Shown here: one piece after another, positions 35,661 through 53,817 of the stretch | Position numbering within the stretch: the stretch's first letter is position 1 | Layout of the letters: each line of letters begins with the position of its first letter | Origin: Oopsacas minuta | Lineage: Eukaryota > Animalia > Porifera | Assembly: GCA_024704765.1 (NCBI GenBank) | Contig: JAKMXF010000321.1 | Coordinates: 1,054,001 to 1,118,000, forward strand | Reading direction: 5' to 3' | DNA: 64,000 nt | Position numbers and translations under genes: made by a program | The notes under the pieces: generated by a model | What the model was told of the DNA's origin: nothing | Database searches by the model: none | Seen by the model: the letters and a program-made list of their open reading frames with translations, nothing else

Positions 35661-37739
35661 ATGTCACTGAACTCACAAACGAGTGCTGAGATAATTTCTG
35701 AAGCCAGAGCTTCTCTCAAATCAACCCGTGTCTCTAGACCTATCACACCCGCTCCCTTTCAACTACGCAGCCTCTGGGGAGATATGACAGAGGGAAGTTC
35801 TAGCAACAGACCCCCCTCTGTCCTCAAGATGTCCCGTTTACCTTTTGCCCCTTCACATAAACGCCCTTCTTCAGGTGTGAGATTAAACCCTATTTCTTAT
35901 CCCTCACCTACTCCACACCCCCCTCATACTTCCCACTCTTCTCGCTCTAGATCTGCTAAACTTATCCGTAAATCCCATTCTTTAGATCAAGTTGCTATTC
36001 CTGTAGAACTAGCAGAGTCCTTATCTATGCTTGATCTGTACACAGAGACTCCCTATTTGGATTGGAAGATAGACAGACTCAAGAACACACTAGCAGCTAT
36101 GTGCAGCTACTTACTCAGCCCCGAGGCTGTTGTAGTTAGTGAGCAATTAGCTGATAAACTCATTATCCCTGTATTCAAGCTTATACAGAGAATACATTAC
36201 TCTTCTATTAGTTCTATACCAAATACTCACTTGTTATTGCTAGGATGCTATGTTGCTATGGTAATTTACGGAAGAATGTCTGTTCTCTCTAGTGTAAATA
36301 ATTCTAACATCAATACTATCAGTCAGCTGGTATTTTCTCTCTCTCGTGATGAAGAAAATGATGTACACTTCATGGACACGGATTGTGTAAATGGAATGCT
36401 TATATTAATACAAGCAGTGAACAAAGCATGCATTCCAGAGTACTTAGTATATCTCCTAGGAGCACTCAAACTGATAACTTCTTCTCTACACTGTTCTTCC
36501 TATATCATAGATAGGTTCCTGTGTATCTCTATACATCTAGCTGAGTATCTTTTCCAGCACCCAGAAGGAGGAAACATGACTGCTCCCTGTCTGCTACAGA
36601 TTGTCTGGTGTCTGAGGAATTTGTGTGATAATAAAGTAGCAATCTTACAGCTGACAACACCTGATACAGTGCTGCTAATTACTAACATCCTCAATATGAC
36701 AGACATACACGAGACTGTATTGTATGCAGCTAAAATATGTTCAAAACTAGCTACTAACCAACTCTTCCACAAATCTGTGATGTGTGAGCAGTCAACTCTA
36801 CCTAACCTTCTGACTGCTTTCGCACTCAACTCTCATTCTCATCTAATCACATCCAAATTAGCCTTCACTCTAAGCCGACTGGTTATGGATGACGTCATTA
36901 TTTCTACTCGTATTTTAGCTATACCAAATTCTATAGACATGATATTACAAGCAGTAGATACTTACTCAGACTTATCGCATCGTGACAGCATGACTTGTCT
37001 ACCAGCTCTCACAAGTCTTATTGGTAATCTCTCTCTTCATCCAGAAGCTGGAATCCTCCTTTCTTCCACTCCCTCTCTCCCTCTCCGCCTAACCTCAGCA
37101 TTAGACGGACTTACACCAGATCTGTATGAAGACACAGAGTTCATAACAGCTCTGTTAACTGCTTTGAATAATCTATCTTACTATAAACTCAGTATAGAGT
37201 GTAGTTTACAGCTGACTTACTCTCTTATCAATCAGCTGTTAATACCGAGCTTATCTCTAACTCTCATTCAACAAATTGTATCCTGTCTTGGCAACCTCAC
37301 ACGTTTTCAAGAATGTAGAGCTATTGTACAGGAAACCAGAACAGATATGTTCTTACTGACACTACTGGACTCAACTGATACAGACGTACTATTCTCCAGT
37401 ACAGGAGCTATCATTAACTTAACTTCTGAATTGAACTGTAATATTCATCTCCTGAACAACGGATTGATTGATAAACTTATCGGTATAATGGAGAATATAG
37501 GATTGACAGATATTCAGGTCATCAGTCACAGCTGTCAGATCCTGTGGAACCTTTCAGGTCTACTGCTTACTCAAATATCAAATCACTCAAAGACTAGTTT
37601 ACAGTGTAAGCAGATAATAAGTTATGTTACAGAGTATGTTAATGCTACAACCCAGTCACTTAGTGATGAGGTTATACATTTCTTACAGGTTGCTAACAAG
37701 TTGATATCCAAACTGAATACTATGTTATCAGATTCTTGA
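35661..37739 (+). CDS. ARMC2: Armadillo repeat-containing protein 2
   Basis: N-terminal TSAEIISEARASL....RPITP...RSLWG...RPPS is the ARMC2 signature, followed by ARM-like helical repeats; intronless, 692 aa. Confidence 0.85.
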   Translation: MSLNSQTSAEIISEARASLKSTRVSRPITPAPFQLRSLWGDMTEGSSSNRPPSVLKMSRLPFAPSHKRPSSGVRLNPISYPSPTPHPPHTSHSSRSRSAKLIRKSHSLDQVAIPVELAESLSMLDLYTETPYLDWKIDRLKNTLAAMCSYLLSPEAVVVSEQLADKLIIPVFKLIQRIHYSSISSIPNTHLLLLGCYVAMVIYGRMSVLSSVNNSNINTISQLVFSLSRDEENDVHFMDTDCVNGMLILIQAVNKACIPEYLVYLLGALKLITSSLHCSSYIIDRFLCISIHLAEYLFQHPEGGNMTAPCLLQIVWCLRNLCDNKVAILQLTTPDTVLLITNILNMTDIHETVLYAAKICSKLATNQLFHKSVMCEQSTLPNLLTAFALNSHSHLITSKLAFTLSRLVMDDVIISTRILAIPNSIDMILQAVDTYSDLSHRDSMTCLPALTSLIGNLSLHPEAGILLSSTPSLPLRLTSALDGLTPDLYEDTEFITALLTALNNLSYYKLSIECSLQLTYSLINQLLIPSLSLTLIQQIVSCLGNLTRFQECRAIVQETRTDMFLLTLLDSTDTDVLFSSTGAIINLTSELNCNIHLLNNGLIDKLIGIMENIGLTDIQVISHSCQILWNLSGLLLTQISNHSKTSLQCKQIISYVTEYVNATTQSLSDEVIHFLQVANKLISKLNTMLSDS

Positions 37740-38350: not shown

Positions 38351-39781
38351 ATGCCTGGGAGATCAACAGCTGAAGAGTACGTGAGCCCTGGACCCTCACA
38401 TTACTCTCCCAGAGACACTATAACAGCTCATGCTACACCCAAGTACTCTATGATAGGTAGAGACTCATGTGCTATACCCAACACTCTCCCCTACCCGTCT
38501 CCTGCTGACAGAGATATCAGTACAGATCTGCTACGTGTACAGACTAGGTATATTTCTCAGAAAGGGAAGGGTACCACGTGGCCCTACGGTACTAGGAAAG
38601 ATAATCACATAACAACTAGTCCGGGACCTAACCTTAATCTGGTGTACAAGAACTTAGGTAGTTCTGAAGGAGGAGCTTGTCTCTCAGATAGAAACAAGCA
38701 CGGAATTATACAGGGATATCCTAGCAAATTTGCACAACCTGTCGATACGCTAGGATTCCAAACTCCAGGACCTGCTGAATATACTCCTCATCCTACAGAC
38801 ACCATACCTGGAGTTAAGAAGAGCTTTGGAGTAGTGTTACCCAGAGAGAGTGCTTACACCTGTACCCCTGGAGCAGGTAGCTACGAGATAGTAGGCTCAT
38901 TTGATGATACCACTGCTGGTCATAACTTTGGGAGACGTATAGAAGGATACACCATGGATATCAAGCCATCTCCTAACAAATACTACTTGCCTTCTACAAA
39001 TAATAAGAACCTTAGCTTTACTATGCAATCAAAGAATGAACCTGTATTCAAATCAAATGGAGTATCTCCTAACAGCTATCATATCAGTGCTACTAACTCT
39101 ACAGGTGGTAAATACTCCAGGAGTACAGGCATGCAATACAGAGCATTTGATGCTAATCCTACTATTGCTCCTACTGCTACTAGTTATGATGTTGATAAGC
39201 CATTTCATGCTGACACTAGTCCTCTCCACGCATCTAGATGTCTACCTGTATATCCGGATGTTCTGCAATACCCAGAGTTTCGTTCCTTATCAACTCCATC
39301 CCCTTCTCTCTACCATCCCTCCCTATCTCTCACTAGACCACTAGATCCCAGCTACACATTCGGAACTGCATTCCGCCGTTCCAGCTCGCTTACTCCCGCA
39401 CCTAACCGTTACAATACTCAAGACATTAAGACATCCAAACATCTACATGGTTCTTCTTATACCATGCGGCCTAGAACAGTGGATCTCTCTGCTGATTCTG
39501 TTAAACATCAATTACCAGGTCCTTCGGACTACTGTACCTATGAAGTTAAGACATCTACTCCCCTATATTCATTCGGCAGGAAACACTCTCATGAAGACAA
39601 ACTAGATATGAGTAATACTCCAGCTGATCTATCTCCTTCCACCTACCAGATCCCTGATAATATCTCTCACAGAGGAGTTATCAAGTCTCCTGCTTACTCA
39701 ATAAAAGGTAAGATATCTCCTAAGATGTATAACGGGTTCTCTAACTCTTCTATTCTTGTTAAGCTATCCTCCGTCAGCTAA
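38351..39781 (+). CDS. ODF3/SHIPPO1 (CIMAP1/STPG-like) PGP-repeat ciliary protein
   Basis: Repeated (S/T)PGPxxY motifs: SPGPSHY, TPGPAEY, TPGAGSY, PSPNKY, TPAPNRY, LPGPSDY, with YSFG / YTMR spacers. Confidence 0.85.
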   Translation: MPGRSTAEEYVSPGPSHYSPRDTITAHATPKYSMIGRDSCAIPNTLPYPSPADRDISTDLLRVQTRYISQKGKGTTWPYGTRKDNHITTSPGPNLNLVYKNLGSSEGGACLSDRNKHGIIQGYPSKFAQPVDTLGFQTPGPAEYTPHPTDTIPGVKKSFGVVLPRESAYTCTPGAGSYEIVGSFDDTTAGHNFGRRIEGYTMDIKPSPNKYYLPSTNNKNLSFTMQSKNEPVFKSNGVSPNSYHISATNSTGGKYSRSTGMQYRAFDANPTIAPTATSYDVDKPFHADTSPLHASRCLPVYPDVLQYPEFRSLSTPSPSLYHPSLSLTRPLDPSYTFGTAFRRSSSLTPAPNRYNTQDIKTSKHLHGSSYTMRPRTVDLSADSVKHQLPGPSDYCTYEVKTSTPLYSFGRKHSHEDKLDMSNTPADLSPSTYQIPDNISHRGVIKSPAYSIKGKISPKMYNGFSNSSILVKLSSVS

Positions 39782-41819: not shown

Positions 41820-43469
41820 ATGCTACCACAATTCTTCTTTATGCTTACCGCAGCTTATATCCTATTATGCCTATATCTATATCTATATCCTACCGCTATT
41901 GCTAAAGCCATATCCATATCCACCAAGGCTAACATATCTTCTTATGTCTGGCCCTATCCTACCTCGATAAAATGCAGTGATAGAGCATTCCTAATCGCAA
42001 ACAAAGAGATGCATTTCGCACTGATGGAGCCTGGATTATTCCCCAATGCTCACCCTATCCTATTCCAGGCATTTGATGAGTACCATCATATTATTCTGAA
42101 CCTGACAAAACAGATCCCAGATTCTTTCACTCAGATTTCTAACAGTCATTTCAAGTTAGAATTCATTCAGCTTAATGTTACCCTAAAAAATGATGACGTC
42201 ACCTTGACATATGAGACCAAAGAAGACTACGTACTATCAGTAGATTATCCTGCCTCTACACTGACAGCTACTACTGTGTATGGAGCTCTGAGAGGGTTAG
42301 AAACATTCAGTCAGCTGATACTGGAGTACAATGACAGTCAGCTGTATTTGCATCAATGTGTAATAACTGATGCTCCTTACTTTAAGCACCGAGGTATACT
42401 CTATGACACTTCTCGTCACTATTTGCCTGTGTCTCTGCTCAAGAAACATCTGGATGTCATGGCATGGAACAAATTCAATGTATTTCATTGGCACATAGTA
42501 GACATACAATCCTTCCCTTATACCAGTACAATGTTTCCTGATCTGAGTGACAAGGGAGCTTACAGTCCAAGACATGTCTATTCTAAATCTGACATACATG
42601 ATGTAATCACATATGCGAACATGCACGGTATCAGGGTAATGGTAGAATTCGACACTCCAGGACATACAGCCAGTTGGGGGAAAGGTCAGCCAGATCTGTT
42701 GACAACATGCTACCAAGACGACAAGCCTGACGGTACATACGGACCTATTAATGCTATCTCTGATACTACATGGCCTTTCTTAACAGCTCTCTTCAAAGAG
42801 ATCGTAACTGATTTCAAATACCAGTACATCCATCTGGGAGGAGATGAGGTTAGATTCGATTGCTGGAAGTCTAACCCTTCTATCCAGAAGTGGATGAAGG
42901 ATATGAACTATACAGATTATGCTATGTTCGAGCAATATTACATGAGTAAGCTGATTGAGTTAATAGAGCAGTTAGACAAGAGTTATATTGTATGGCAGGA
43001 AGTGTTTGATAACGGAAATAAATTAAAAGAAGATACAATAATACATGTATGGAAGGGAGGAGCTTTATGGACAATAGAGATGAGGAAAATAACTGCTGCT
43101 GGTTATCACACCCTCCTGTCATCTTGCTGGTATTTAGATCTCATTAGTATTAAGCCTGATTACTATCGTTACTTCAGATGTAACCCTCTTGATTTCGGAG
43201 GTACCACAGCACAACAGAGTCTAGTTATGGGAGGGGAGGCTGCTATTTGGTCAGAGTTGGTGGATGGGACTAACTCCTTGTCTCGTACTTGGCCTAGAGC
43301 TGGTCCAACAGCAGAGAGACTGTGGACTGGTTCTAGTACTATCGGGATATCTGATGATGAGATATACGATAGACTGAAAAAGCACAGATGTAGACTGCTC
43401 AATAGAGGTATTCCTGCAGAGCCATTAGGGCCAGGATACTGTACATACCCCTGGGTATCTACAGAATAA
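41820..43469 (+). CDS. Beta-hexosaminidase (GH20, HEXA/HEXB-like), secreted/lysosomal
   Basis: Signal peptide; VYGALRGLETFSQL, RGILYDTSRHY, FNVFHWHIVD, EFDTPGHT, HLGGDEV (catalytic DE), GGEAAIWSE, WPRA..AERLW. Confidence 0.96.
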   Translation: MLPQFFFMLTAAYILLCLYLYLYPTAIAKAISISTKANISSYVWPYPTSIKCSDRAFLIANKEMHFALMEPGLFPNAHPILFQAFDEYHHIILNLTKQIPDSFTQISNSHFKLEFIQLNVTLKNDDVTLTYETKEDYVLSVDYPASTLTATTVYGALRGLETFSQLILEYNDSQLYLHQCVITDAPYFKHRGILYDTSRHYLPVSLLKKHLDVMAWNKFNVFHWHIVDIQSFPYTSTMFPDLSDKGAYSPRHVYSKSDIHDVITYANMHGIRVMVEFDTPGHTASWGKGQPDLLTTCYQDDKPDGTYGPINAISDTTWPFLTALFKEIVTDFKYQYIHLGGDEVRFDCWKSNPSIQKWMKDMNYTDYAMFEQYYMSKLIELIEQLDKSYIVWQEVFDNGNKLKEDTIIHVWKGGALWTIEMRKITAAGYHTLLSSCWYLDLISIKPDYYRYFRCNPLDFGGTTAQQSLVMGGEAAIWSELVDGTNSLSRTWPRAGPTAERLWTGSSTIGISDDEIYDRLKKHRCRLLNRGIPAEPLGPGYCTYPWVSTE

Positions 43470-43919
43470 CCTGATTTTATATGTATGTGTATGTGTGTAA
43501 TACTATATACAGATGACAGAGAATGAGATGTACGTATTTTCATATATTAAAGTTTAATCTTTCACAGAATACTAGATTCATGTATGCAATCTTCCATGAT
43601 ACTACATCTATACAATTATCCTAATTGGGAATGCAATTATTTGTCCTCTTAACTAGTATTATAGTATTGTACACACATTGTTGTACATTAACCTCACTAA
43701 TTGCTCTCGGTAGCAAGCAAGTATTAGTTCGGCTTCAATTAATATCCAATCTAATTGATTTACTCAATTTATGTTTTCAAATAGTTAATGAGGGAGGTTA
43801 AGGTTTCTCAAGGCTCTTTTGGTTATTGAAGTGCAATCTGAAGACGCATAACGAATTCCACTCTCCATTTCTTTGTCATTATAAATACTCTTAATAAAAC
43901 AATCTGATAAATTATAATA

Positions 43920-45350
43920 ATGGCAGATTTAATCAGAAATCCTTCTCCTCCTCATCAAGCGAAAACAGATAGCACAGAGCTGAAACAGCTGCTACAGACT
44001 CAGGCTGATGACGTCATCATGGATACTCTCTTCAGCAAATCCTGGCTGATAACTACAATGAACAGAGTAGTGCAGTATGTACAAAAGGGGTTGATACAGT
44101 ATCCTATAGCTAGTGCTAAACCAATAATCGTTGATCTTACTGATTCTAGTCCTGAGACAGGTGTAGTCTCTTCTCCTAAAAGAGCTAAACTTAACACTGA
44201 GAATGATACTGCAGTAGAATTGCTAGATTGTAAAGATAATGGAGAGACTAAAGACAGCACTAATCCTATACAAAAACCATCAATTGATAACTCAACAGAT
44301 CTAACAGATAAGAAAGGTGGAGGAGATACTACATCTACAGCAGCTACACTCAGTGATACGACTAACTCCAATAGGCTAGTCCTGGAGCTAGATGCAGAGC
44401 TAGAGAAGGAGTTCTGTAATCTGTGGGATGCTACAGTCAATCAGCACGTAGCTGTGTTCTTCAGTGAGAATAATCTAATACCTATTCTAATACACACCGT
44501 TTGTAACTCTAGATATCCCCGTCTGAATGAGATGTGTATGGGAGTACTAGCTAACATAGCTTGTAATACAAACATAGCTGAAAAAGAGTTCTCTTCTCCG
44601 CATATAGCTTGGTTCAGTTGTAACATGCTGACATGTGATGACCCTCAGACATTAATGGAGACTCTACGTCTCATAGAGACATGTGTAACTGACGAGAGTA
44701 CACAGGAAGTTTGGTGTAATGTATTCGAGGATCAGAAAGTTATTGATACAGTTCAGTTCATATTCGATAGCTCTACGAATACAGAACTTTTATTCTCTCT
44801 CTCCAGACTAGTAGATCTTCTTCTCGACCTCTGGTCTCCTCTCCTATACAAGTTCAGTACGGTAGAAATGACTTATGCACTATTTGAGGCTCACAGCCAG
44901 ATCATGCATCCAAGTCTGGAGACAGCTGTTAATATAATAATGATAATACACCAGTTGTCAACAGCTGATGAAGGAGTACAGGTATTGCTCAAGCTACACA
45001 CAACTATGGTAGACAGCTGCAGTAATCATATAATGATATTACATGAAGAGTTAGGACCTCAGCTAGCGTTTAGTGATGCTAGCTACAGAGCTGCTGTAGC
45101 CTTGCTTCAAATAACAGTAGATAGCATGAAAATAAAATTAGGTACTTTGTTGATGGAGGATGGGAAAGACTTCCTCGCAGTGCTGGGAGATATTTATCAG
45201 AAAAATGTTAAACTATACTGTAAAGAGGAGATGCCTGCTAAATCAAAATCTCCCTCAGTAACGAAATCGCCACTTATAAATCAGACAACAGAGAATTGTG
45301 AACAATTAGAATTACTTGAAAAGACTCACTTGCTAGAACAAAATATATGA
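43920..45350 (+). CDS. SAAL1: Protein SAAL1-like
   Basis: RNPSPP start, TLFSK.WL, LD.ELE.E.C..WD, PRL.E.C.G.LANIAC motifs as in SAAL1. Confidence 0.8.
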   Translation: MADLIRNPSPPHQAKTDSTELKQLLQTQADDVIMDTLFSKSWLITTMNRVVQYVQKGLIQYPIASAKPIIVDLTDSSPETGVVSSPKRAKLNTENDTAVELLDCKDNGETKDSTNPIQKPSIDNSTDLTDKKGGGDTTSTAATLSDTTNSNRLVLELDAELEKEFCNLWDATVNQHVAVFFSENNLIPILIHTVCNSRYPRLNEMCMGVLANIACNTNIAEKEFSSPHIAWFSCNMLTCDDPQTLMETLRLIETCVTDESTQEVWCNVFEDQKVIDTVQFIFDSSTNTELLFSLSRLVDLLLDLWSPLLYKFSTVEMTYALFEAHSQIMHPSLETAVNIIMIIHQLSTADEGVQVLLKLHTTMVDSCSNHIMILHEELGPQLAFSDASYRAAVALLQITVDSMKIKLGTLLMEDGKDFLAVLGDIYQKNVKLYCKEEMPAKSKSPSVTKSPLINQTTENCEQLELLEKTHLLEQNI

Positions 45351-45576
45351 ATATCAGTTGTGTATATGTTGTTTACCTTAAGTATTATAATGCATCAATT
45401 ATCCCATTGTTTCTGAATCCTGACTACTATTACTGTATGTGAGTTATATTACTAATTGCTCTCTAACCTATGGAGGGATTAATTAATTACTAATGATACA
45501 AGGAATTTCTCGATCCTTGTTGTTTGTGCTCGGTACTCCTCCGTGGACTGTCCTCACATCATTGCCCCCTATCGCT

Positions 45577-45784
45577 TGTGTTTCTGAAATATAGTTGAGT
45601 GATTATGCTAGATTATAATTAATTATGAGCCGTTTTTCGCGAATTTCGTCTGACATTATAACTCATCAATTTTACCCACCACAGATTGAATATCTTACTC
45701 AGCGGCAGCGGAGCAGACGAAATTCGCGAAACGGCTCATAATTAATTATAATTTAGCATAATTGAACTATATTCCAGAAACACA
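45577..45784. mobile_element. Foldback MITE / inverted repeat (~75-bp arms)
   Basis: TGTGTTTCTG.AATATAGTT...ATTATGAGCCGTTT(T)TCGCGAATTTCGTCTG mirrored by CAGACGAAATTCGCGAAACGGCTCATAAT...CAGAAACACA. Confidence 0.75.
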
Positions 45785-45822
45785 ATAATTCGTTTATATA
45801 ATTGTATACACAGTTAGCAATT

Positions 45823-48800
45823 ATGATGAAATGTAAATGTTCAGCGGACTTGCTTCCTCTGGAAGATATATGTTTCTACGCTAAGCATAGCAAATCTGTA
45901 GATCTAATGATAAGATATGAGAAAGCAAACAGCTTAGAATGCAAATTCGATTTAATTCCGGATAAGCCAAACTATTTCAAAATACTATGCGTCAAATGTC
46001 ATCAATCCGTTGGAAAGAAACATCCCCACGGTCCTAATTCCTCAAACATAATGGCCTTTGGAAATGATAAGGTCATGCTTCTAGAAAGGAAGCTGGGTAG
46101 TTCTAAAATGAATGCTTGGTATAACGTGTATAAAGACCCTCCATTTAATGAGGTACTCGTACGGAACTCTGATAATTTCTTCGGAATAGACAAAAGTACA
46201 AACACCCCTGATGCTAACCCAAATAACCAACAAAACTCTGTAACATGTCCTATTGTCTGGCCTGATTGTCAAAATGAGTCTGATTTTTATCTTGATGACG
46301 TTATAATGTCAGACGTTATACCAAGAGATTACCAGATAACAGCATATCTAGAAGCTCTACAGAGAGATCTTATCCTTGTACTCCCTACTGGATGCGGTAA
46401 GACACTTGTAGCTAGCATGGTAGCTGCTAAAATGAAGATGCTTAATCCTAACCACATGATACTATTCTTAGTAGACAGAATTCCTCTGGTATTTCAGCAG
46501 GGAGAGTCCATTAGTATAGCTACCCACCTGAATGTCTGTTCTCTTACATCAGAGCTGAATACAGATCTGAAACGTCGTAAACTGAATCAAGGTGTATATG
46601 ATGTTCTTGTAACGACAGCTGGCTCCTTCCTCTCTCTACTCAGTTGTTTGAATATTAATCAGTTCTGCTATGTAGTATTTGATGAATGTCATCATGCTAC
46701 TAAGGAACACGAGTACAAAGTAGTGCTGGAGAAAATCAAGACGTGTGATCCAAATAATCGGCCACGTGTTCTAGGACTGACTGCCTCTCCTCCTTCTACC
46801 AAGGGCCAGCTGGAAGATTTCAGAAGAAGTTTCTTCGATGCACCCATTTGTCACGACTTGTCCCTTACACACTATAAATACGCTACTCCCTCAATTGAGA
46901 AGTGTATTGTACGATCTGAACCAGACTGGCACTTGACTAATTACCTTCAAATATTAGAGAACGAACTCTATAAATTAGCAGATAGTATTAATGAACCCCA
47001 TTCCGGAACAAATAGTATTAATGAACCCCATTCCGGAACAAATAGTATTAATGAACCCCATTCCGGAACAAATAGTATTAATGCTCTCCATTCCGGAACA
47101 GATAGTATTAATGAACCCCATTCCGGAACAAATAGTATTAATGCTCTCCATTCCGGAACAGATAGTATTAATGAACCCCATTCCGAAATGATAGGCAAAT
47201 CTAACTGGCAGGATAAGAATAAGAGAGATCAATTATGCACGAAATTAGACTCTTTACAGGATGATGATAAAATAAAGAAAGATATTGAATCTATGAAGAA
47301 TATATGTAGGGTTATGACTATAACAGAACTATTAGGTGTAACGTATGCTAACAATACGTTAGAAGGTATGGATGTGTATTCAAGGTTGAAAAATGATGAT
47401 ATATTCTCTCCCAGGCTGGAAGGGCTGTTTCAAGAACTTGATAAGTTAGATTCATCATCTAAAATTATCATTTTTGTTCGCACACGTCAAATAGCTCACA
47501 TTCTGACTGATATTCTCAAGAGGAATGACAGCATTAACAAGAAGTTTTCTCCCTTGAAGATAGTGGGACAGTATGGACTGTTTGGTATGAGCTGGATAAA
47601 CGAACAAGAAGAGATCTTACAGAATTTCCGTGATGGATGCTGTAATCTTCTCGTGAGCACCTCTGTGCTGGAAGAGGGACTTGATATTCCGTACTGTGAT
47701 GTGGTCATCAGGTTTGACAAGATAGATTCATTGATCTCATACAAGCAGAGTAAAGGTAGGGCTAGAAAGCCGGACAAGTGTAAATTCATTCTTATAATCT
47801 CTGAGAAAGATGAGCAACACTTGACAAAGATACAAGAGCATGAACAACAGGTTAAACAGCTGTTAACAGATCACTTTACTGATGCTGCTGTCCCTTCAGA
47901 ATTCACTAAAAAAATAGAAATACAAATAATAAAAGATATAGCAATATCTGCTACTCCTAGTAACGCTAGTGAACTGATATTTGTGTCAGAATGTGCTGTT
48001 GAGTTCTATCTTGAAGGAATATTTGAGCTCTTTGATATAGGAGATGAAATTGCTAATTTCCTTAGAGATGATCACCATTTGATGCTTAACTTAATTGATC
48101 AAGCTAGAGATAAATCTAACTGGAAGAGCAAGAGTATTTTCCCGCCAGAAGATTCCCTCTTTATACTAGGCCTACATACCCAAAGTAGGAACGTTTATCA
48201 GCGCTACTTCCAGTTATCTATGGACTGGGACTATACCTTCATGAAAAATAATGTTTGGACCAAAGTACAGGTACCTACAAGCAAATCCTTGGACATAAAA
48301 TCAGTGTGGCCTATCACTAAGATCTCATTAGGTAGCTTCATAGACAGAAAGAGATATCAGTTGAGCGAGGTATTTGGAAAGAATGAAGATGAGAGCATAG
48401 ATATTATCGGACAATTCGAATTAGTATTGAAAGAGAATATTGAGATCAAGTTAACCTCAATTAAATTATTTATTGAAATTCCTTTCACTTCCATTCATCG
48501 CTTCGTCTTAACTCATTGGAAAGATAGTGACGTCACTCTATATCTACCGTTAAGCTACTGCCCCACAATACGTACTCATTATAGGGGTCCTAGACTGTCA
48601 TGTAACGAGTGTGACTATTTAAAATCCTTTGGAGATTATCCTGTATTGTCTGTGACACTGAAATACGATAAATCTGAATGGAGTGATATTTGGATATTCC
48701 TCCATTCTTCAGTTTTCCCTATCCCAGTATTTGATACTCAAGTTAGCATCAGTAAACATACACCAATAATACAAGAACAAAATTATTCACAGATTTCTGA

Positions 48801-51800
48801 TAAGAGAGTTCAGGATTGTGTTTGGATGTTTTATGTACTCAAATCCAACAGAGACATTTGTTTACCTGACCAGACTATTCATGACATTTATTCTGAAGTA
48901 TCAAATCAAATTAATGAGTCAGATTGCTCTCACATAAACGCATTAAAATTGACAATTGAGAATTTGGTATCAAGGATATCTAGGGGTAAGACTTACTATT
49001 TCTTTGATTTGATAAACTCATTCCAAAAGGATTTCACAAACAGAAAGGAACTAAAACATGATGCCAATCTCCCTGATATTCAGAAGAACTATCGTTTTAT
49101 AGAATGTGCTATGCTTACTCCAGCAACAATCATTCCCCTCCCTCCTGTATACACTCAGTGTAGCAGACTGTACAGGAAATACCCAGATGAGAGGTTCTTG
49201 AACTTAGCCTTCAGAGAAGAGCATGGAGAAGCGCTTAATTGTACGGAGGAATTCAGGAATCGTATTGAAAGTTGTTTGATAACTGGAGTAGAAATAAACG
49301 GAATCAGATTCCACTTTCTGCTATGTAGTGGTAGTCAAATGAGAAGCAAAAGAGCTATATTCATTCACGTCAATGCGGCAGATTCCCAGGAGGCGATTAG
49401 GAGTATAAGGTCAGAACTTATCGGGGACAGCAAGATAAGTAACACCACCAAATATCTATCCAGACTAGGATTGTTCTGTACTTCAGATCATCCTATTTGT
49501 GAGATAGACAGGGATACTACTCATCAGATAGATGATTTACTGGCAGAGAATAGAGTAAAGTTAACTGATGGGAATGGAAAGATTAATATGTCTATAGCCG
49601 AGCAGGTATTTCAGAACGCTAATGTTAAGCAGAATGCTTCTATTGATAACACTACAGCTATACAGGTACGATTAGCTGGGCTTAAAGGCGTATTAACTAT
49701 AGTTGATCCCAAAGAAGATGCGGACTTCCGTGAGAAGAGACAAGGTACTACTATCATATACAGAGAATCTATGAAAAAGATAAATTGGACAGATTCTATG
49801 CTGTGTCTTGTTAAGGTTGGTAAGTATAGTCATCTGTACTTCAACACACAAATGCTGACCCTGTTAGCTAGTCTAGAAGATAGCAGTACAATGTGGGATC
49901 CTAAACCCAGACTGAGACAGCTCTATAGAAATACTCTGCAAGAATACGCTGGGTTTCTCCATAAGGGAGACAGTGCTAACAAAAAGCTAAAGTCTAGTTA
50001 TCCTAACTATCGGAAGGAAACTAGCGAGCATTTTGACATACTCTCAGAGCCTTTTTTCCTATCTTTACTTAGATGCATTTATACATTCAAAATACGACTT
50101 ATGCTTAGAAAGTTCCATTTTCTTGCAGAAGATGCCTGTTTGTTGATGGGGATACCTGATCCCATAGGTGTGTTAAAGGACGGGGAAGTATTTATTACTT
50201 ATATCGATGAAGATGGGAAGCACCAGATAAAAGAAGGACGTATTCTAGTGTATAAGAACCCTTGTCTACATCCAGGAGACTTGTTGGTACCCACCGCTGT
50301 TGACAAGGATGAACTTCATCACCTGCACAATGTTATAGTGTTCCCAATTATTGGTAAGATATCGCTCCCTGCTTGTAGTGGGGGAGGGGATTTAGATGGA
50401 GATGAGTTTGGTATTATTTGGGATGAGGAGCTAGTGCCACCCGAAGGGGCTACATTCGCCCCCTTAAACTATGACAAAGTTCTAGCTGAGTACAAAGAAA
50501 AACTACAACAAGATGAACCTGAATCAGAAGATGAAAATCTAGAACTCCCCTTACATAATGACCCTAACATATCTAAGATATTAGCCGGAGCATACTTCAA
50601 GATAGTATCAAATGACCTGTTAGGTATAATATCACATTACCATGTAGCTGTTAGTGATATGAGGGAAAATGGAGCTAGAGATGAGCTGGCTATAGAGCTA
50701 GCTAGATTAGCTTCTCTAGCAGTAGACTCTCCTAAGACTGGTATTACTCCTATTGTTCCTAAAGAAATACAAAATCTAATAAAAGATAAAGGTTATCCTG
50801 ATTTTATGGAGAAGATAGCCTCTACTTCTTATCCCTCTACCAAGCTCCTAGGAGAGTTATATCAAATGGCTAAGTCTACATGTTACGAAGTTAGTGAATG
50901 GGCAAATGTACTTAACTTCTATGACAAACATGATTTCAAACACAAGATACCAGCTAATATCCCAATACAGATTTTCCAGATACCAGGCCATGAGGAGTTC
51001 ATGGAGGAAGCTAAATCAATTTACTTCGAGTATGCTACTGCTCTACAGAGACTGATGCTGGCTTTTGGTATTAATACAGAAGCTGAATTGGTGTTAGGTA
51101 TGATTATTCGATGTCACCCCCTCCTATCAGCTGATCACGGTAAGACCACGAATGCTCTACAAGCTGCTGTAGAGGATCTCTCACAAGAATACAGATACAT
51201 ATTCCGTAAGGGTATGGATGAGGATCAGTTATATCAAAAGGCTGCTGCTTGGTATCTTACCGTGTATGAATGTCTACAGAGTCAAGACAACATCTTCCTA
51301 TCTTTCCCATGGTTAGTAGGAGAATATCTCTGTAAGATCGTCAAGTCCTCAAAAGTTAATGTTAAAACAGATATGCCTACGTCAATAGGGAAATCAGCAA
51401 GAGAGTACCTAACAGATAAAAAAGGGACTATAGAGAATATTGTCGGCTCTAAGATAAATTTAGTACAATCTATTGATTTAGCTATCAACCAACATGCTAG
51501 AACTATGTTTGCATCAGCTAGTACTGATGATGCAGAGAGGATATTCAATGTTCAAGCTTTTGGTTCTGTTTCTAAATATCATTGTCAGCCGGAGTCAGAT
51601 TTGGATATCTCTGTATCTCTAACAGAGTATGGTCACACTCTAATACCTAATTCTAGACATAACACACCAAATGAACTAACGAAGATACGGAAAAACATCC
51701 TAGAAACCTATATCTCTCCTTCTCTGGGTAACATTGCTGACTCCAAATCTAATAAGTTTAATTTAGAAGTTCCTATAATATCTATTCAAATGGATTCTCC

Positions 51801-53817
51801 CATGAAGAGCTGTCCACAAGTTAGTGTAGACCTAACTGTAGAGAGTGATGGAGTAGACAAGGCTAATCATATACTTCAGCTCTACAGTACTACCAAGGGA
51901 GTATTCTTCTCATTGCTATGGATACTCATCCACTGGGCTAGACATGTAGGGATATTAAAGTGTCATAGTTCACCAGATAGCACAGGGATGATACTAACAG
52001 CAGAGTTTGAAGCATTGGTGTTATATATCTATGAGCAAATGGATAATAAGCCTCAAACAATTGTAGGTGATGAAATAGATTGCTCTCTCGATTCTATGTT
52101 TCACTCATTGACATCTGCAGACTTAGATAAGACATTAGGATTTGTATTAGAAGAATTCTTTCATTTCGGTTACAAAATAACAAGAGATAAATCAGAAATT
52201 AAGTATACATGGCCTATTAAAGGGGAACCTTTTCACACTATCCATCCAGTAGCTCTCAGCAAAATCTCTGGCCTCCTGTTCCAGGGTTGGCACTGTTTGG
52301 CATTCACAAGAGACATCTCTAAGTTGTTACAACGAGTGGAGATAAATCTCAAATTCGTAAAACGATTCTCAACCTTTCTGAGTGATATGATACGATCTTC
52401 TACACAATACTACGAGAAAGATTTAACCAACAAAACTGGTTGTATCGTTAAAATAGAACAAATGGGAAGAAATATTCTCCTTACTGCTCAGGGCTCAGCC
52501 AGTTCTATCCACGAACTATCAAGTGAGGTAACTCGGATAGAATCTAACTCTGCTCTAACTAAGAGATACAAATCCAATGCTAGTCGATATATGATTGATG
52601 GTAACTTAGTTTTAGTTATTGCTAATAATTCATTAGATTCTAAAGTTAAGCTAAAGGATTTTACACACGGTTGTTGTAAGCATTTTCATTACTACAACAA
52701 GAAGAGCATTCTGGTGTCTACTGACAAATCTATAAATAACAATTGGAAAGAAGAAGGAACAGTTAAGTTGAAGAATCGACTCTGTGCTCAATTGAAAGAT
52801 TTCCCTACAAAGTGTAATGATTTCCTAGAGAATCTTAAGTTTAAGACAAGGTTTGGATCTTTCTATGTGCTAGAGGGAATTGATGCTATGCATAGCGTGG
52901 GAAATTCTCTGGATGTGGAGGAGTTTGAATCCTGCTTAGTGAAAGGAAAAAGTAACCGATTTGGCGACAATAGCACAGTTGAGGAGAAGAGTGCAATTCC
53001 TTCTAACTTACAACTTAATAAGGATAATAAATCTATTCGGGATAAACCACCTCAAAACCAGAAGCCGAAAGATCATAAAACGAAAAATAAGGATAAAGTA
53101 TATTCTCTGAGTAGCGGATTCTGCCCAGGAATATATAATATAAAAACTCCTGAACGAATGGAAATGTCAAAGCAAGTATTCAGAACATCTCTACAGGAAT
53201 GTAAATTCACTCGCCTTGACGAAGGCAAGAAGTATACCTGGCGAGTTGAGCTAGAAATGGCTGTAAATTATGATATACGAGTGAACTTAGACTCTACTTT
53301 CCGTGTAGTTGGTATCTACACACGTCCTTACATATGGCTGATGGCAACCATCCTATCTGACAGGAATACTGTTGATGAACGGATAGCTCACGATCTCAGA
53401 TTGCGTGCTGAAAGTACAAAAGTTATTGGAAAAGATACTGACCTTTACAAGGTTGTTCTACCAGATGGCCTGGTCTCCTCTGTGCTGAATACCAATGAAA
53501 ATGGAAAGGTAGAGCCCTGTGATCGTCTCAAGGATAAGGTAAAGATAATCAAACATAACAAAGAAGTAGAGTATTACAAATTAGAGAATGTTGTGGCTAA
53601 GATGTGTTCTGGTACGGAGTACTGTAGAGAGAACTTTGATAATGAGAGACAATTCTGTGAATTGACTCTATATCACAGTGAAGATGAGTTAATTCGTAGT
53701 GTAGCTTCAGGTAGCGATAGCAGCTGTAGAATACAGTCTATAGCAACATCTGCTGTAGATATATCATTAAAATTGTCTGAAGTTATTCAGAACAATATGC
53801 CTGAGTTCAATACTTAG
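45823..53817 (+). CDS. Multidomain RNA-silencing enzyme: Zn-binding domain - Dicer/RIG-I-type DExH helicase - eukaryotic RdRP - Cid1/TUTase-like nucleotidyltransferase - unknown C-terminus (2664 aa from the first ATG)
   Basis: Helicase: PRDYQ, LPTGCGKT (46381), DECHH (46681), LTASP, EEGLD, QSKGRAR. RdRP: SGSQMR, SRLGL, TDGNG, QVRLAGLKG, KNPCLHPGD, SGGGDLDGD (DLDGD at 50389-50403). NTase: FGS (51562), SDLDI (51598), VDLT (51829). One uninterrupted ORF. Confidence 0.92.
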   Translation: MMKCKCSADLLPLEDICFYAKHSKSVDLMIRYEKANSLECKFDLIPDKPNYFKILCVKCHQSVGKKHPHGPNSSNIMAFGNDKVMLLERKLGSSKMNAWYNVYKDPPFNEVLVRNSDNFFGIDKSTNTPDANPNNQQNSVTCPIVWPDCQNESDFYLDDVIMSDVIPRDYQITAYLEALQRDLILVLPTGCGKTLVASMVAAKMKMLNPNHMILFLVDRIPLVFQQGESISIATHLNVCSLTSELNTDLKRRKLNQGVYDVLVTTAGSFLSLLSCLNINQFCYVVFDECHHATKEHEYKVVLEKIKTCDPNNRPRVLGLTASPPSTKGQLEDFRRSFFDAPICHDLSLTHYKYATPSIEKCIVRSEPDWHLTNYLQILENELYKLADSINEPHSGTNSINEPHSGTNSINEPHSGTNSINALHSGTDSINEPHSGTNSINALHSGTDSINEPHSEMIGKSNWQDKNKRDQLCTKLDSLQDDDKIKKDIESMKNICRVMTITELLGVTYANNTLEGMDVYSRLKNDDIFSPRLEGLFQELDKLDSSSKIIIFVRTRQIAHILTDILKRNDSINKKFSPLKIVGQYGLFGMSWINEQEEILQNFRDGCCNLLVSTSVLEEGLDIPYCDVVIRFDKIDSLISYKQSKGRARKPDKCKFILIISEKDEQHLTKIQEHEQQVKQLLTDHFTDAAVPSEFTKKIEIQIIKDIAISATPSNASELIFVSECAVEFYLEGIFELFDIGDEIANFLRDDHHLMLNLIDQARDKSNWKSKSIFPPEDSLFILGLHTQSRNVYQRYFQLSMDWDYTFMKNNVWTKVQVPTSKSLDIKSVWPITKISLGSFIDRKRYQLSEVFGKNEDESIDIIGQFELVLKENIEIKLTSIKLFIEIPFTSIHRFVLTHWKDSDVTLYLPLSYCPTIRTHYRGPRLSCNECDYLKSFGDYPVLSVTLKYDKSEWSDIWIFLHSSVFPIPVFDTQVSISKHTPIIQEQNYSQISDKRVQDCVWMFYVLKSNRDICLPDQTIHDIYSEVSNQINESDCSHINALKLTIENLVSRISRGKTYYFFDLINSFQKDFTNRKELKHDANLPDIQKNYRFIECAMLTPATIIPLPPVYTQCSRLYRKYPDERFLNLAFREEHGEALNCTEEFRNRIESCLITGVEINGIRFHFLLCSGSQMRSKRAIFIHVNAADSQEAIRSIRSELIGDSKISNTTKYLSRLGLFCTSDHPICEIDRDTTHQIDDLLAENRVKLTDGNGKINMSIAEQVFQNANVKQNASIDNTTAIQVRLAGLKGVLTIVDPKEDADFREKRQGTTIIYRESMKKINWTDSMLCLVKVGKYSHLYFNTQMLTLLASLEDSSTMWDPKPRLRQLYRNTLQEYAGFLHKGDSANKKLKSSYPNYRKETSEHFDILSEPFFLSLLRCIYTFKIRLMLRKFHFLAEDACLLMGIPDPIGVLKDGEVFITYIDEDGKHQIKEGRILVYKNPCLHPGDLLVPTAVDKDELHHLHNVIVFPIIGKISLPACSGGGDLDGDEFGIIWDEELVPPEGATFAPLNYDKVLAEYKEKLQQDEPESEDENLELPLHNDPNISKILAGAYFKIVSNDLLGIISHYHVAVSDMRENGARDELAIELARLASLAVDSPKTGITPIVPKEIQNLIKDKGYPDFMEKIASTSYPSTKLLGELYQMAKSTCYEVSEWANVLNFYDKHDFKHKIPANIPIQIFQIPGHEEFMEEAKSIYFEYATALQRLMLAFGINTEAELVLGMIIRCHPLLSADHGKTTNALQAAVEDLSQEYRYIFRKGMDEDQLYQKAAAWYLTVYECLQSQDNIFLSFPWLVGEYLCKIVKSSKVNVKTDMPTSIGKSAREYLTDKKGTIENIVGSKINLVQSIDLAINQHARTMFASASTDDAERIFNVQAFGSVSKYHCQPESDLDISVSLTEYGHTLIPNSRHNTPNELTKIRKNILETYISPSLGNIADSKSNKFNLEVPIISIQMDSPMKSCPQVSVDLTVESDGVDKANHILQLYSTTKGVFFSLLWILIHWARHVGILKCHSSPDSTGMILTAEFEALVLYIYEQMDNKPQTIVGDEIDCSLDSMFHSLTSADLDKTLGFVLEEFFHFGYKITRDKSEIKYTWPIKGEPFHTIHPVALSKISGLLFQGWHCLAFTRDISKLLQRVEINLKFVKRFSTFLSDMIRSSTQYYEKDLTNKTGCIVKIEQMGRNILLTAQGSASSIHELSSEVTRIESNSALTKRYKSNASRYMIDGNLVLVIANNSLDSKVKLKDFTHGCCKHFHYYNKKSILVSTDKSINNNWKEEGTVKLKNRLCAQLKDFPTKCNDFLENLKFKTRFGSFYVLEGIDAMHSVGNSLDVEEFESCLVKGKSNRFGDNSTVEEKSAIPSNLQLNKDNKSIRDKPPQNQKPKDHKTKNKDKVYSLSSGFCPGIYNIKTPERMEMSKQVFRTSLQECKFTRLDEGKKYTWRVELEMAVNYDIRVNLDSTFRVVGIYTRPYIWLMATILSDRNTVDERIAHDLRLRAESTKVIGKDTDLYKVVLPDGLVSSVLNTNENGKVEPCDRLKDKVKIIKHNKEVEYYKLENVVAKMCSGTEYCRENFDNERQFCELTLYHSEDELIRSVASGSDSSCRIQSIATSAVDISLKLSEVIQNNMPEFNT
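46981..47186 (+). repeat. In-frame 30-bp coding minisatellite x7: (D/N)SIN(EP/AL)HSGT
   Basis: Units start at 46981, 47011, 47041, 47071, 47101, 47131 and 47161. Confidence 0.97.

Follow-up and report, generated by a model that had tools for sequence, protein, structure and literature searches.

RNA-dependent RNA polymerases (RdRPs) of the cellular type are patchily distributed among animals, and it is unclear what they do in groups other than nematodes. Some of these polymerases work with separately encoded partners, as in the Schizosaccharomyces pombe RNA-directed RNA polymerase complex (RDRC), the Tetrahymena Rdr1–Rdn complexes and the Caenorhabditis elegans systems involving DRH-3, RDE-3 and PIR-1. 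Others carry a helicase in the same chain: the helicase–RdRP layout has been published for Dictyostelium and oomycetes and, in 2016, for Hydra and Nematostella, in diagrams drawing three Pfam domains only (Bollmann et al., PMC4791657). Dictyostelium RrpC, placed in a family of "a similar domain structure," is required for the silencing of DIRS-1 and for the spreading of small interfering RNAs (siRNAs) (PMC3950715). The survey of animal RdRPs by Pinzon et al. (2019) mentions neither a helicase nor a nucleotidyltransferase (NTase), and Calcino et al. (2018) reported the demosponge Amphimedon to be without an RdRP. Here we analyze a gene of the glass sponge Oopsacas minuta that encodes a helicase, an RdRP and an NTase in one chain. 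The gene lies in a 64,000-nt stretch of DNA (assembly GCA_024704765.1, contig JAKMXF010000321.1, forward-strand positions 1,054,001 to 1,118,000), which we call the window and to which all nucleotide coordinates refer.

Domains and family of the encoded protein

The + strand frame 45802..53817 is a single uninterrupted open reading frame (ORF), starting with an ATG at 45823 and ending with a TAG at 53815–53817, and stops occur in the same frame directly upstream of the ATG. It comprises 2,664 codons in surrounding DNA of ~37% G+C, a combination that excludes a chance origin, and the protein is identical to the ORF product on record from the 1.33-Mb contig. An initial annotation of this DNA had described one intronless ORF combining a DExH helicase, an RdRP with a DLDGD motif and an NTase of the Pol-beta family, and the ORF reading, the Pfam matches, the motifs and the structural models confirm both the description and its coordinates. 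Five recognizable modules stand in a fixed order, all of them conserved, and the three catalytic centers are intact; the modules at the two ends emerged from structure prediction and had no place in the initial annotation. The features, with amino acid (aa) positions in the protein and the fold assignments taken from predicted structures, are as follows, RLR denoting the RIG-I-like receptors and CTD their C-terminal domain:

45823..53817, + strand: complete intronless ORF, 2,664 aa and TAG (ORF reading)
45823..46197, + strand: predicted zinc module of the RLR-CTD fold, aa 1–125, with putative Zn ligands C4, C6, C56 and C59 (AlphaFold2 model, VIA, Foldseek)
46321..46800, + strand: helicase RecA1 (ResIII/DEAD, aa 167–326) with motif I GCGKT and motif II DECH (Pfam, motifs)
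46982..47185, + strand: in-frame tandem repeat of 30 nt × 6.8, SINEPHSGTN units, in the insertion between the helicase lobes (repeat analysis)
47431..47763, + strand: helicase RecA2 (Helicase_C, aa 537–647), followed by motif VI QSKGRARK at 47746–47769 (Pfam, motifs)
47920..49113, + strand: conserved middle region, aa 700–1097 (family-wide conservation)
49114..51345, + strand: RdRP core (PF05183, with DLDGD at 50389–50403) and head region to aa 1841 (Pfam, RDR2 alignment)
51370..52353, + strand: predicted terminal nucleotidyltransferase (TENT), Cid1/GLD-2/CutA-like, aa 1850–2177, with G1914-S1915, D1926, D1928 and D2003 (model, fold searches, motifs)
52354..52584, + strand: small alpha/beta linker domain, aa 2178–2254, for which the fold searches gave no match of its own (AlphaFold2 secondary structure)
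52585..53811, + strand: predicted triphosphate tunnel metalloenzyme (TTM) beta-barrel, aa 2255–2663 (AlphaFold2 model, VIA, residue conservation)

The two helicase lobes were detected with Pfam as ResIII/DEAD (aa 167–326) and Helicase_C (aa 537–647), and the motifs that mark the Dicer/RLR type of superfamily 2 (SF2) are all present: motif I (GxGKT) as GCGKT at 46390–46404, motif II as DECH at 46681–46692 and motif VI (QxxGRxxR) as QSKGRARK. The nearest sequences with solved structures are a reconstructed ancestral Dicer helicase, Arabidopsis DCL1 and DCL4, LGP2, MDA5 and RIG-I, and judged by its sequence, the helicase is of the Dicer/RIG-I-like DExH type. An insertion of ~210 aa (aa 327–536) separates the RecA lobes and contains the tandem repeat, which shows 91% matches with no indels, encodes about seven SINEPHSGTN units and lies in a stretch where the family alignment shows some of its lowest conservation. 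This in-frame repeat of 10 aa × 7 appears to be private to the present copy.

The polymerase has both hallmarks of the cellular RdRPs, a full-length match to PF05183 (aa 1098–1682, E 2.1e-111, 581 of the 582 profile positions) and the catalytic DxDGD loop (DLDGD, aa 1523–1527), and Arabidopsis RDR2 aligns with aa 1144–1841 (E 1e-52). For the middle region upstream of the core, the single lead is a weak one from ESM Atlas features (score 0.80, to RDR2 PH-like/RRM), and the region may contain RRM/PH-like accessory domains such as RdRPs have at their N-termini. Pfam searches with the N-terminus, the middle region, the linker and the tail taken singly produced no informative match, even with the threshold relaxed to E 5. 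The NTase motif GS-x10-DLD was confirmed at 51562–51606, with the third Asp, D2003, encoded within 51817–51837; the helicase and RdRP motifs were checked at window coordinates in the same manner.

To assess conservation, we aligned 31 family sequences from sponges, three cnidarians and one oomycete. Invariant in all 31 are G192-K193-T194, D287-E288-C289-H290 and G645-R646-A647-R648 of the helicase, D1523-L-D-G-D1527 of the RdRP, and G1914, S1915, D1926, D1928, D2003, K2013 and R2040 of the NTase. The mean column identity is 0.48–0.72 in every block, the nonenzymatic blocks included.

When 1.84 billion cluster representatives were searched with a profile built from the C-terminal region, 321 proteins matched with E no higher than 0.001, and 92 with E no higher than 1e-30. 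Scored with hidden Markov models for seven blocks (N-term, helicase, middle, RdRP, NTase, tail1 and tail2), the 50% cluster representatives include ~25 long proteins with the seven-block order in full or for the most part; nearly all of them have DxDGD and most have the NTase motif. The layout was found in at least six eukaryotic lineages, with members in cnidarians (the jellyfish Sanderia and Rhopilema, and Hydra), oomycetes (Pythium and Aphanomyces), the dictyostelid Acytostelium (NTase motif present), dinoflagellates (Prorocentrum and Effrenium), diplonemids (Diplonema and Sulcionema) and streptophytes (the liverwort Riccia and the alga Mesotaenium). Homologues recovered include those of Hydra (P0034), Aphanomyces (P0035), Pythium (P0178) and Acytostelium (P0190). 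The helicase–RdRP–TENT architecture is not a sponge or animal invention.

The finding is real and correctly described, but the gene adds a member to an ancient family that was already known and does not represent a new architecture among animals. The initial annotation had been aware of no triple fusion in an animal; rarity of the fusion is not supported, given the shared seven-block layout. It had also cited the Dictyostelium Rrp proteins as fusions of helicase and RdRP: the Rrp type lies within this family, and a dictyostelid member, the Acytostelium homologue, has the NTase motif. Dictyostelium discoideum RrpA–C were not among the proteins retrieved, nor was any Dictyostelium Rrp protein among the Swiss-Prot AlphaFold models in the Foldseek search; that RrpA–C carry the extra domains is suggested by the Acytostelium homologue, the one basis for the statement. 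Some members already bear a PF22600 tag from automatic Pfam annotation. In the literature that we searched, no paper describes an NTase, a tunnel or a CTD-like module in RdRPs of this family, and none combines RdRP, NTase and helicase for these organisms, although an earlier mention elsewhere is possible.

We inferred a maximum-likelihood tree for 35 full-length proteins (quick search, unrooted, with compositional heterogeneity flagged). The sponge sequences form one clade (SH-like approximate likelihood ratio test 100), whose sister clade contains the cnidarians and two unnamed sequences (95), a pattern that fits vertical descent within animals followed by duplication in glass sponges. The nearest named relatives are two "RdRP1-like" proteins of O. 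minuta with ~50% identity, and the gene is one of several glass-sponge paralogues in an ancient eukaryotic family of helicase-carrying "Rrp/RDR" proteins. The closest relative overall (P0002, 66–69% identity) comes from a 14.8-kb scaffold labeled as metagenome (L002, ERZ23489137). Sponge genomic DNA is evidently present under metagenome records, and taxonomic counts for the family could be misled by it.

Predicted structures of the nucleotidyltransferase and the two end modules

At the sequence level, the NTase gave a weak signal. Pfam MTPAP-like_central (PF22600) matched aa 1905–2022 with 27.4 bits against a cut-off of 27, rising to 30.9 bits when the NTase region was scanned by itself, and a family profile compared with PDB sequences reached CutA and Cid1 at E 0.02–0.4, the matches coinciding precisely with the catalytic motifs; a sequence scan of the ORF protein gave no hit to Pfam PF03828. 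We modeled aa 1845–2664 with AlphaFold2 using 24 family sequences and obtained a mean predicted local distance difference test score (pLDDT) of 80.5. In VIA, model residues 1–333 superposed on CutA, TUT4, MEAT1, TUT1, GLD-2 and TUT7 with Z 17–19 over ~260–280 residues, and also on canonical poly(A) polymerases (PAPs) with Z 17–19. Foldseek searches against the PDB and the Swiss-Prot models agreed (E 1e-6 to 1e-5). Because the AlphaFold2 model and independent fold searches match the TENTs, we consider the marginal sequence signal settled: as modeled, the domain has the Cid1/GLD-2-type TENT fold, comprising catalytic and central (PAP-associated) domains. The TENT motif hG[GS]-x(9–13)-DhD is present as FGS-x10-DLD (aa 1913–1928), followed by the third Asp, D2003.

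The C-terminal part of the model (residues 411–819, aa 2255–2663) is predicted to form a tunnel-shaped barrel, with pLDDT mostly 80–97. The VIA matches are trypanosome RESC1 and RESC2 (Z 22.0 and 20.6), the yeast RNA triphosphatase Cet1 (17.7) and S. pombe Pct1 (15.3), and a Cet1 orthologue is among the Swiss-Prot model matches of the tail. Foldseek matches to RESC1/2 were also considered as a signal of the NTase and rejected, since the VIA alignment ranges place them in the tail. RESC1/2 resemble Cet1 without two of its three metal-binding glutamates, the tunnel of RESC2 binds the 5′-triphosphate of guide RNA, and no recognizable relatives of the pair have been reported beyond kinetoplastids (PMC10201420).

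In the predicted model of the sponge protein, the tunnel is lined by R2343, D2524, R2526, R2528, E2530, K2577, E2599, R2609 and E2613. These residues occupy alternate strand positions and are conserved across 76 sequences, with R/K at 2528 and K/R at 2577. One strand ends in F-G, reading LKFKTRFG here and K/Q/R-x-K/S/T-x-R/H across the 76 members, and we take it to be the ExExK strand of Cet1/CYTH on the basis of the shared x-F-G pattern, not of residue-level superposition. The metal-binding glutamates found in the first strand of Cet1-type enzymes (ExExK) are missing from it, and we do not class the gene as an active enzyme of that type; its tunnel fold, basic lining and lost catalytic glutamates are those of a RESC-like pseudo-triphosphatase (PMC10201420). 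As the ExExK glutamate pair is absent, we read the tunnel as a binder of 5′-triphosphates: by analogy with RESC2, it probably binds a 5′-triphosphate end without hydrolyzing it. A profile of the tail, searched against PDB sequences to E 10, recovered neither RESC nor Cet1 chains and nothing else of relevance, and no Pfam family matches the tail by sequence. Given these results, we describe the tunnel as a resemblance in fold and claim neither homology nor membership.

Two further observations concern the tail. A disordered Lys-rich insert breaks the barrel at aa ~2377–2425 (window 52951–53097, pLDDT 27–41) and could be a nuclear localization signal or an RNA-binding tail. Among the Swiss-Prot models, the best Foldseek matches of the tail, ahead of the NTases, are yeast mitochondrial SLS1 and S. 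pombe C582.04c (E ~4e-8, query TM 0.21–0.26, C-terminal model residues 191–815); judging by the models, these two may be further tunnel-fold proteins related to RESC1/2.

At the other end of the protein, the AlphaFold2 model of aa 1–125 has a pLDDT of 88.8. All of the top nine VIA matches are CTDs of LGP2, MDA5, RIG-I, DRH-1 and DRH-3, with Z 8.9–10.9 over ~100 residues, and a Yippee/MsrB tier follows at Z 5–7; Foldseek gave the same result as VIA. Each of the putative zinc ligands C4, C6, C56 and C59 is a cysteine in 90% or more of the 27 sequences compared, across sponges, dinoflagellates, a diplonemid and a liverwort. Pfam RIG-I_C-RD was not detected by sequence in the N-terminal module, and the predicted structure is the RIG-I/MDA5/LGP2/DRH-3 CTD fold. 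The fold and the four-Cys zinc site are those of an RLR CTD, while the position is not, the module standing N-terminal and not C-terminal to the helicase.

The locus in the sponge genome

In addition to the RdRP gene, the window holds genes for actin, TRAF-type, GH20 hexosaminidase, SHIPPO-repeat, NHL and mariner transposase proteins, mostly as single ORFs; the genome is that of an animal in which many genes lack introns. Three runs of the same sample (X1–X3) yielded contigs that span 47740–53739 with no variant, indel or joint; the runs are genomic and give no evidence of transcripts, because downstream intergenic DNA is also present in them. A fourth run (X4) contained 0.98 of the gene's sampled words versus 0.42 of the intergenic ones, with different adaptors and higher depth, and may be RNA, its library type not being on record. 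In another sponge assembly, the corresponding protein (P0005) is 61% identical, and the order of GH20, SAAL1-like (~470 aa) and RdRP genes is conserved, with the SAAL1-like neighbors being 70% identical between the two assemblies.

An artefact, whether a mis-assembly, a contaminant contig, a pseudogene or an ORF borne by a transposon or virus, might be suspected from an intronless, multicopy ORF with a palindromic element just upstream. The gene lies, however, on a 1.33-Mb contig with actin, TRAF, GH20 and SHIPPO genes, the synteny is retained in the second assembly, the tree is animal-like, and conservation over the full length is incompatible with a pseudogene. On these grounds we rejected the contamination, transposon and pseudogene readings, and on the clean genomic contigs that of mis-assembly; an artefact of any of these kinds is extremely improbable. 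The initial annotation had itself raised mis-assembly and non-animal contamination as concerns, neither of which was borne out, along with the chance that the same architecture was already common, which is what the domain-architecture search found.

Several observations were made in the surroundings of the gene. A nested palindrome of ~210 nt (45576–45785) ends 38 nt upstream of the ATG. It has one pair of arms of 34 nt (97% complementary) and another of 28 nt (86%), and it resembles a miniature inverted-repeat transposable element or a hairpin-forming element in the promoter or 5′ untranslated region. No second copy of its inner arm was found within the window. The upstream GH20 beta-hexosaminidase and SAAL1-like genes (window 41820–45350; L001 1231–5549) have the same order and strand in both sponge assemblies. 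Farther upstream, a 692-aa ORF at 35661–37739 has no Pfam match, and the adjoining 476-aa ORF at 38351–39781 has the SHIPPO repeat as its sole Pfam match.

Possible mechanism and comparison with known systems

By analogy, the protein would carry in cis the helicase, RdRP and NTase activities that the S. pombe RDRC assembles in trans. The initial annotation had drawn this parallel, together with those to the Tetrahymena Rdn proteins and RDE-3, and we find it reasonable. A "sense, tail, copy" mechanism modeled on these systems is plausible. The RLR-CTD-like module and the DExH helicase would select and engage an RNA end and then translocate on or remodel the template, and the RdRP would copy it into a complementary strand with a 5′-triphosphate start. 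The Cid1-like TENT would add untemplated 3′ nucleotides, either to the template, marking or retaining it, or to the product. The RESC2-like tunnel would hold the 5′-triphosphate end, probably without hydrolysis, and so tether or discriminate RNAs of the RdRP type. The biological role, by comparison with related systems, is likely the RNA silencing of transposons or viruses. Substrates, step order, nucleotide specificity, tunnel ligand and biological role are all points that we infer. The identity and family of the protein are near-certain, the mechanistic details stand at about even odds, and we assign the overall reading a probability of about 0.6.

Several points weigh against this account. 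The tunnel and CTD assignments come from predicted structures alone and have no match at the sequence level; a tunnel without the ExExK pair does not permit an enzymatic role to be claimed, and 5′-triphosphate binding is an analogy. For this protein and the other animal members, the support comes from sequence, models and comparison, and transcription of the gene is only suggested, from run X4. Lastly, no secondary siRNAs were detected in Nematostella after injection of double-stranded RNA (dsRNA), which speaks, for one animal at least, against a function as a simple "amplifier" (PMC12768352).

The same Nematostella result, together with the induction of its RdRPs by poly(I:C) (PMC8476169), would suit a protein whose main task is innate sensing or defense in the manner of the RLRs, as opposed to siRNA amplification. 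Such a protein would use its CTD-like module and helicase, whose RLR-CTD fold and RLR/Dicer type agree with this role, to recognize the ends of foreign RNA, and its polymerase and NTase to convert or mark that RNA, for example, into dsRNA for Dicer or with decay tails, without secondary siRNAs. We consider this quite unlikely, as the Dictyostelium genetics link the family to siRNA spreading and retrotransposon silencing (PMC3950715), and the Pfam scan revealed no signaling domain such as CARD.

The tunnel might instead be an active RNA 5′-polyphosphatase and not a passive end-binder, trimming the 5′-triphosphate of RdRP products to di- or monophosphate for Dicer or Argonaute and thus functionally resembling C. 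elegans PIR-1 on a Cet1-like scaffold. The similarity to Cet1 and Pct1 (Z 17.7 and 15.3), the Cet1 orthologue in the Swiss-Prot models and the conservation of the acidic tunnel residues D2524, E2530, E2599 and E2613 are in keeping with this, but the ExExK position reads K/Q/R-x-K/S/T-x-R/H in the 76 members, with the strand placed by pattern, and in structure the domain comes closest to RESC1/RESC2 (Z 22), inactive proteins that have lost the same glutamates. An active tunnel therefore seems unlikely. At the opposite extreme, only the helicase and RdRP would work, the NTase, tunnel and CTD-like parts being inactive scaffolds for folding or partner binding. Pseudo-NTases and pseudo-triphosphatases do exist, with RESC1/2, Utp22 and NF90 among the fold matches, and the Pfam score of the NTase is marginal. 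Yet the G-S / D-x-D / D triad, K2013 and R2040 are invariant from sponge to oomycete, nearly all long representatives keep the NTase motif, and these blocks are conserved equally with the RdRP flanks; we regard inert scaffolds as very unlikely.

As a single locus, the gene is of modest value, the family being already in sequence databases and its layout partly published. Its NTase, tunnel and CTD-like modules, however, seem under-appreciated family-wide, and the proposed mechanism is testable. Glass sponges have kept and multiplied an ancient all-in-one RdRP in which two modules shaped like 5′-end readers flank the linked enzymes, offering a compact, expressible system for the coupling of template choice, copying, tailing and 5′-triphosphate handling. 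For the genetically tractable Dictyostelium Rrp proteins, the family suggests unstudied NTase and tunnel domains.

A broader evolutionary reading is tentative, and we hold it as doubtful: the ancestral RdRP complex would have been one polypeptide, reading RNA ends with an RLR-CTD-like module, unwinding, copying, tailing and gripping the 5′-triphosphate of the product in the tunnel. On this view, the complexes that fission yeast, ciliates and nematodes assemble in trans may be later break-ups, and the kinetoplastid guide-RNA binders RESC1/RESC2 may descend from an RdRP tail. Diplonemids, the sister group of kinetoplastids, still carry the full fusion.

The known systems each share part of this layout. 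The S. pombe RDRC (Rdp1, Hrr1 and Cid12) and the Tetrahymena RDRCs (Rdr1 with Rdn1/2) likewise join an SF2 helicase, an RdRP and a Cid1-family NTase, but as separate polypeptides in trans and without a tunnel or an RLR-CTD-like module; Hrr1, moreover, is an SF2 helicase of a kind other than Dicer/RLR. RLRs and C. elegans DRH-1/DRH-3 have a Dicer/RLR-type DExH helicase with a zinc-binding CTD fold, and DRH-3 works with RdRPs and binds 5′-triphosphate RNA through its CTD (PDB 6m6r, among the CTD matches). In the sponge protein, by contrast, the CTD-like module is N-terminal, CARDs are absent and the helicase is fused to a polymerase. Cid1, GLD-2, CutA, TUT4 and RDE-3 (MUT-2) resemble the NTase in catalytic and central-domain fold and in the catalytic triad, although the sequence similarity to CutA and Cid1 is barely detectable (E 0.02–0.4) and the NTase here is placed between the RdRP and the tunnel. 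RESC1/RESC2 (GAP2/GAP1) share the predicted tunnel fold, the basic lining and the loss of the first-strand glutamate pair; they differ in having no detectable sequence similarity, in forming a free heterodimer instead of a domain of an RdRP and in acting in mitochondrial RNA editing.

The closest systems are the helicase-carrying RdRPs: Dictyostelium RrpA, RrpB and RrpC (DosA), the oomycete RDR, and the Hydra and Nematostella RDRs (RDR-gamma group). Like the sponge protein, they have a Dicer-type DExH helicase and Helicase_C N-terminal to PF05183 and are 2,300–2,700 aa in length, although published descriptions draw two or three Pfam domains only. The sponge copy is distinguished from them by being intronless, one of several paralogues and the bearer of a private repeat in the helicase insert, while the Hydra, oomycete and dictyostelid proteins are its direct full-length homologues, the NTase motif included.

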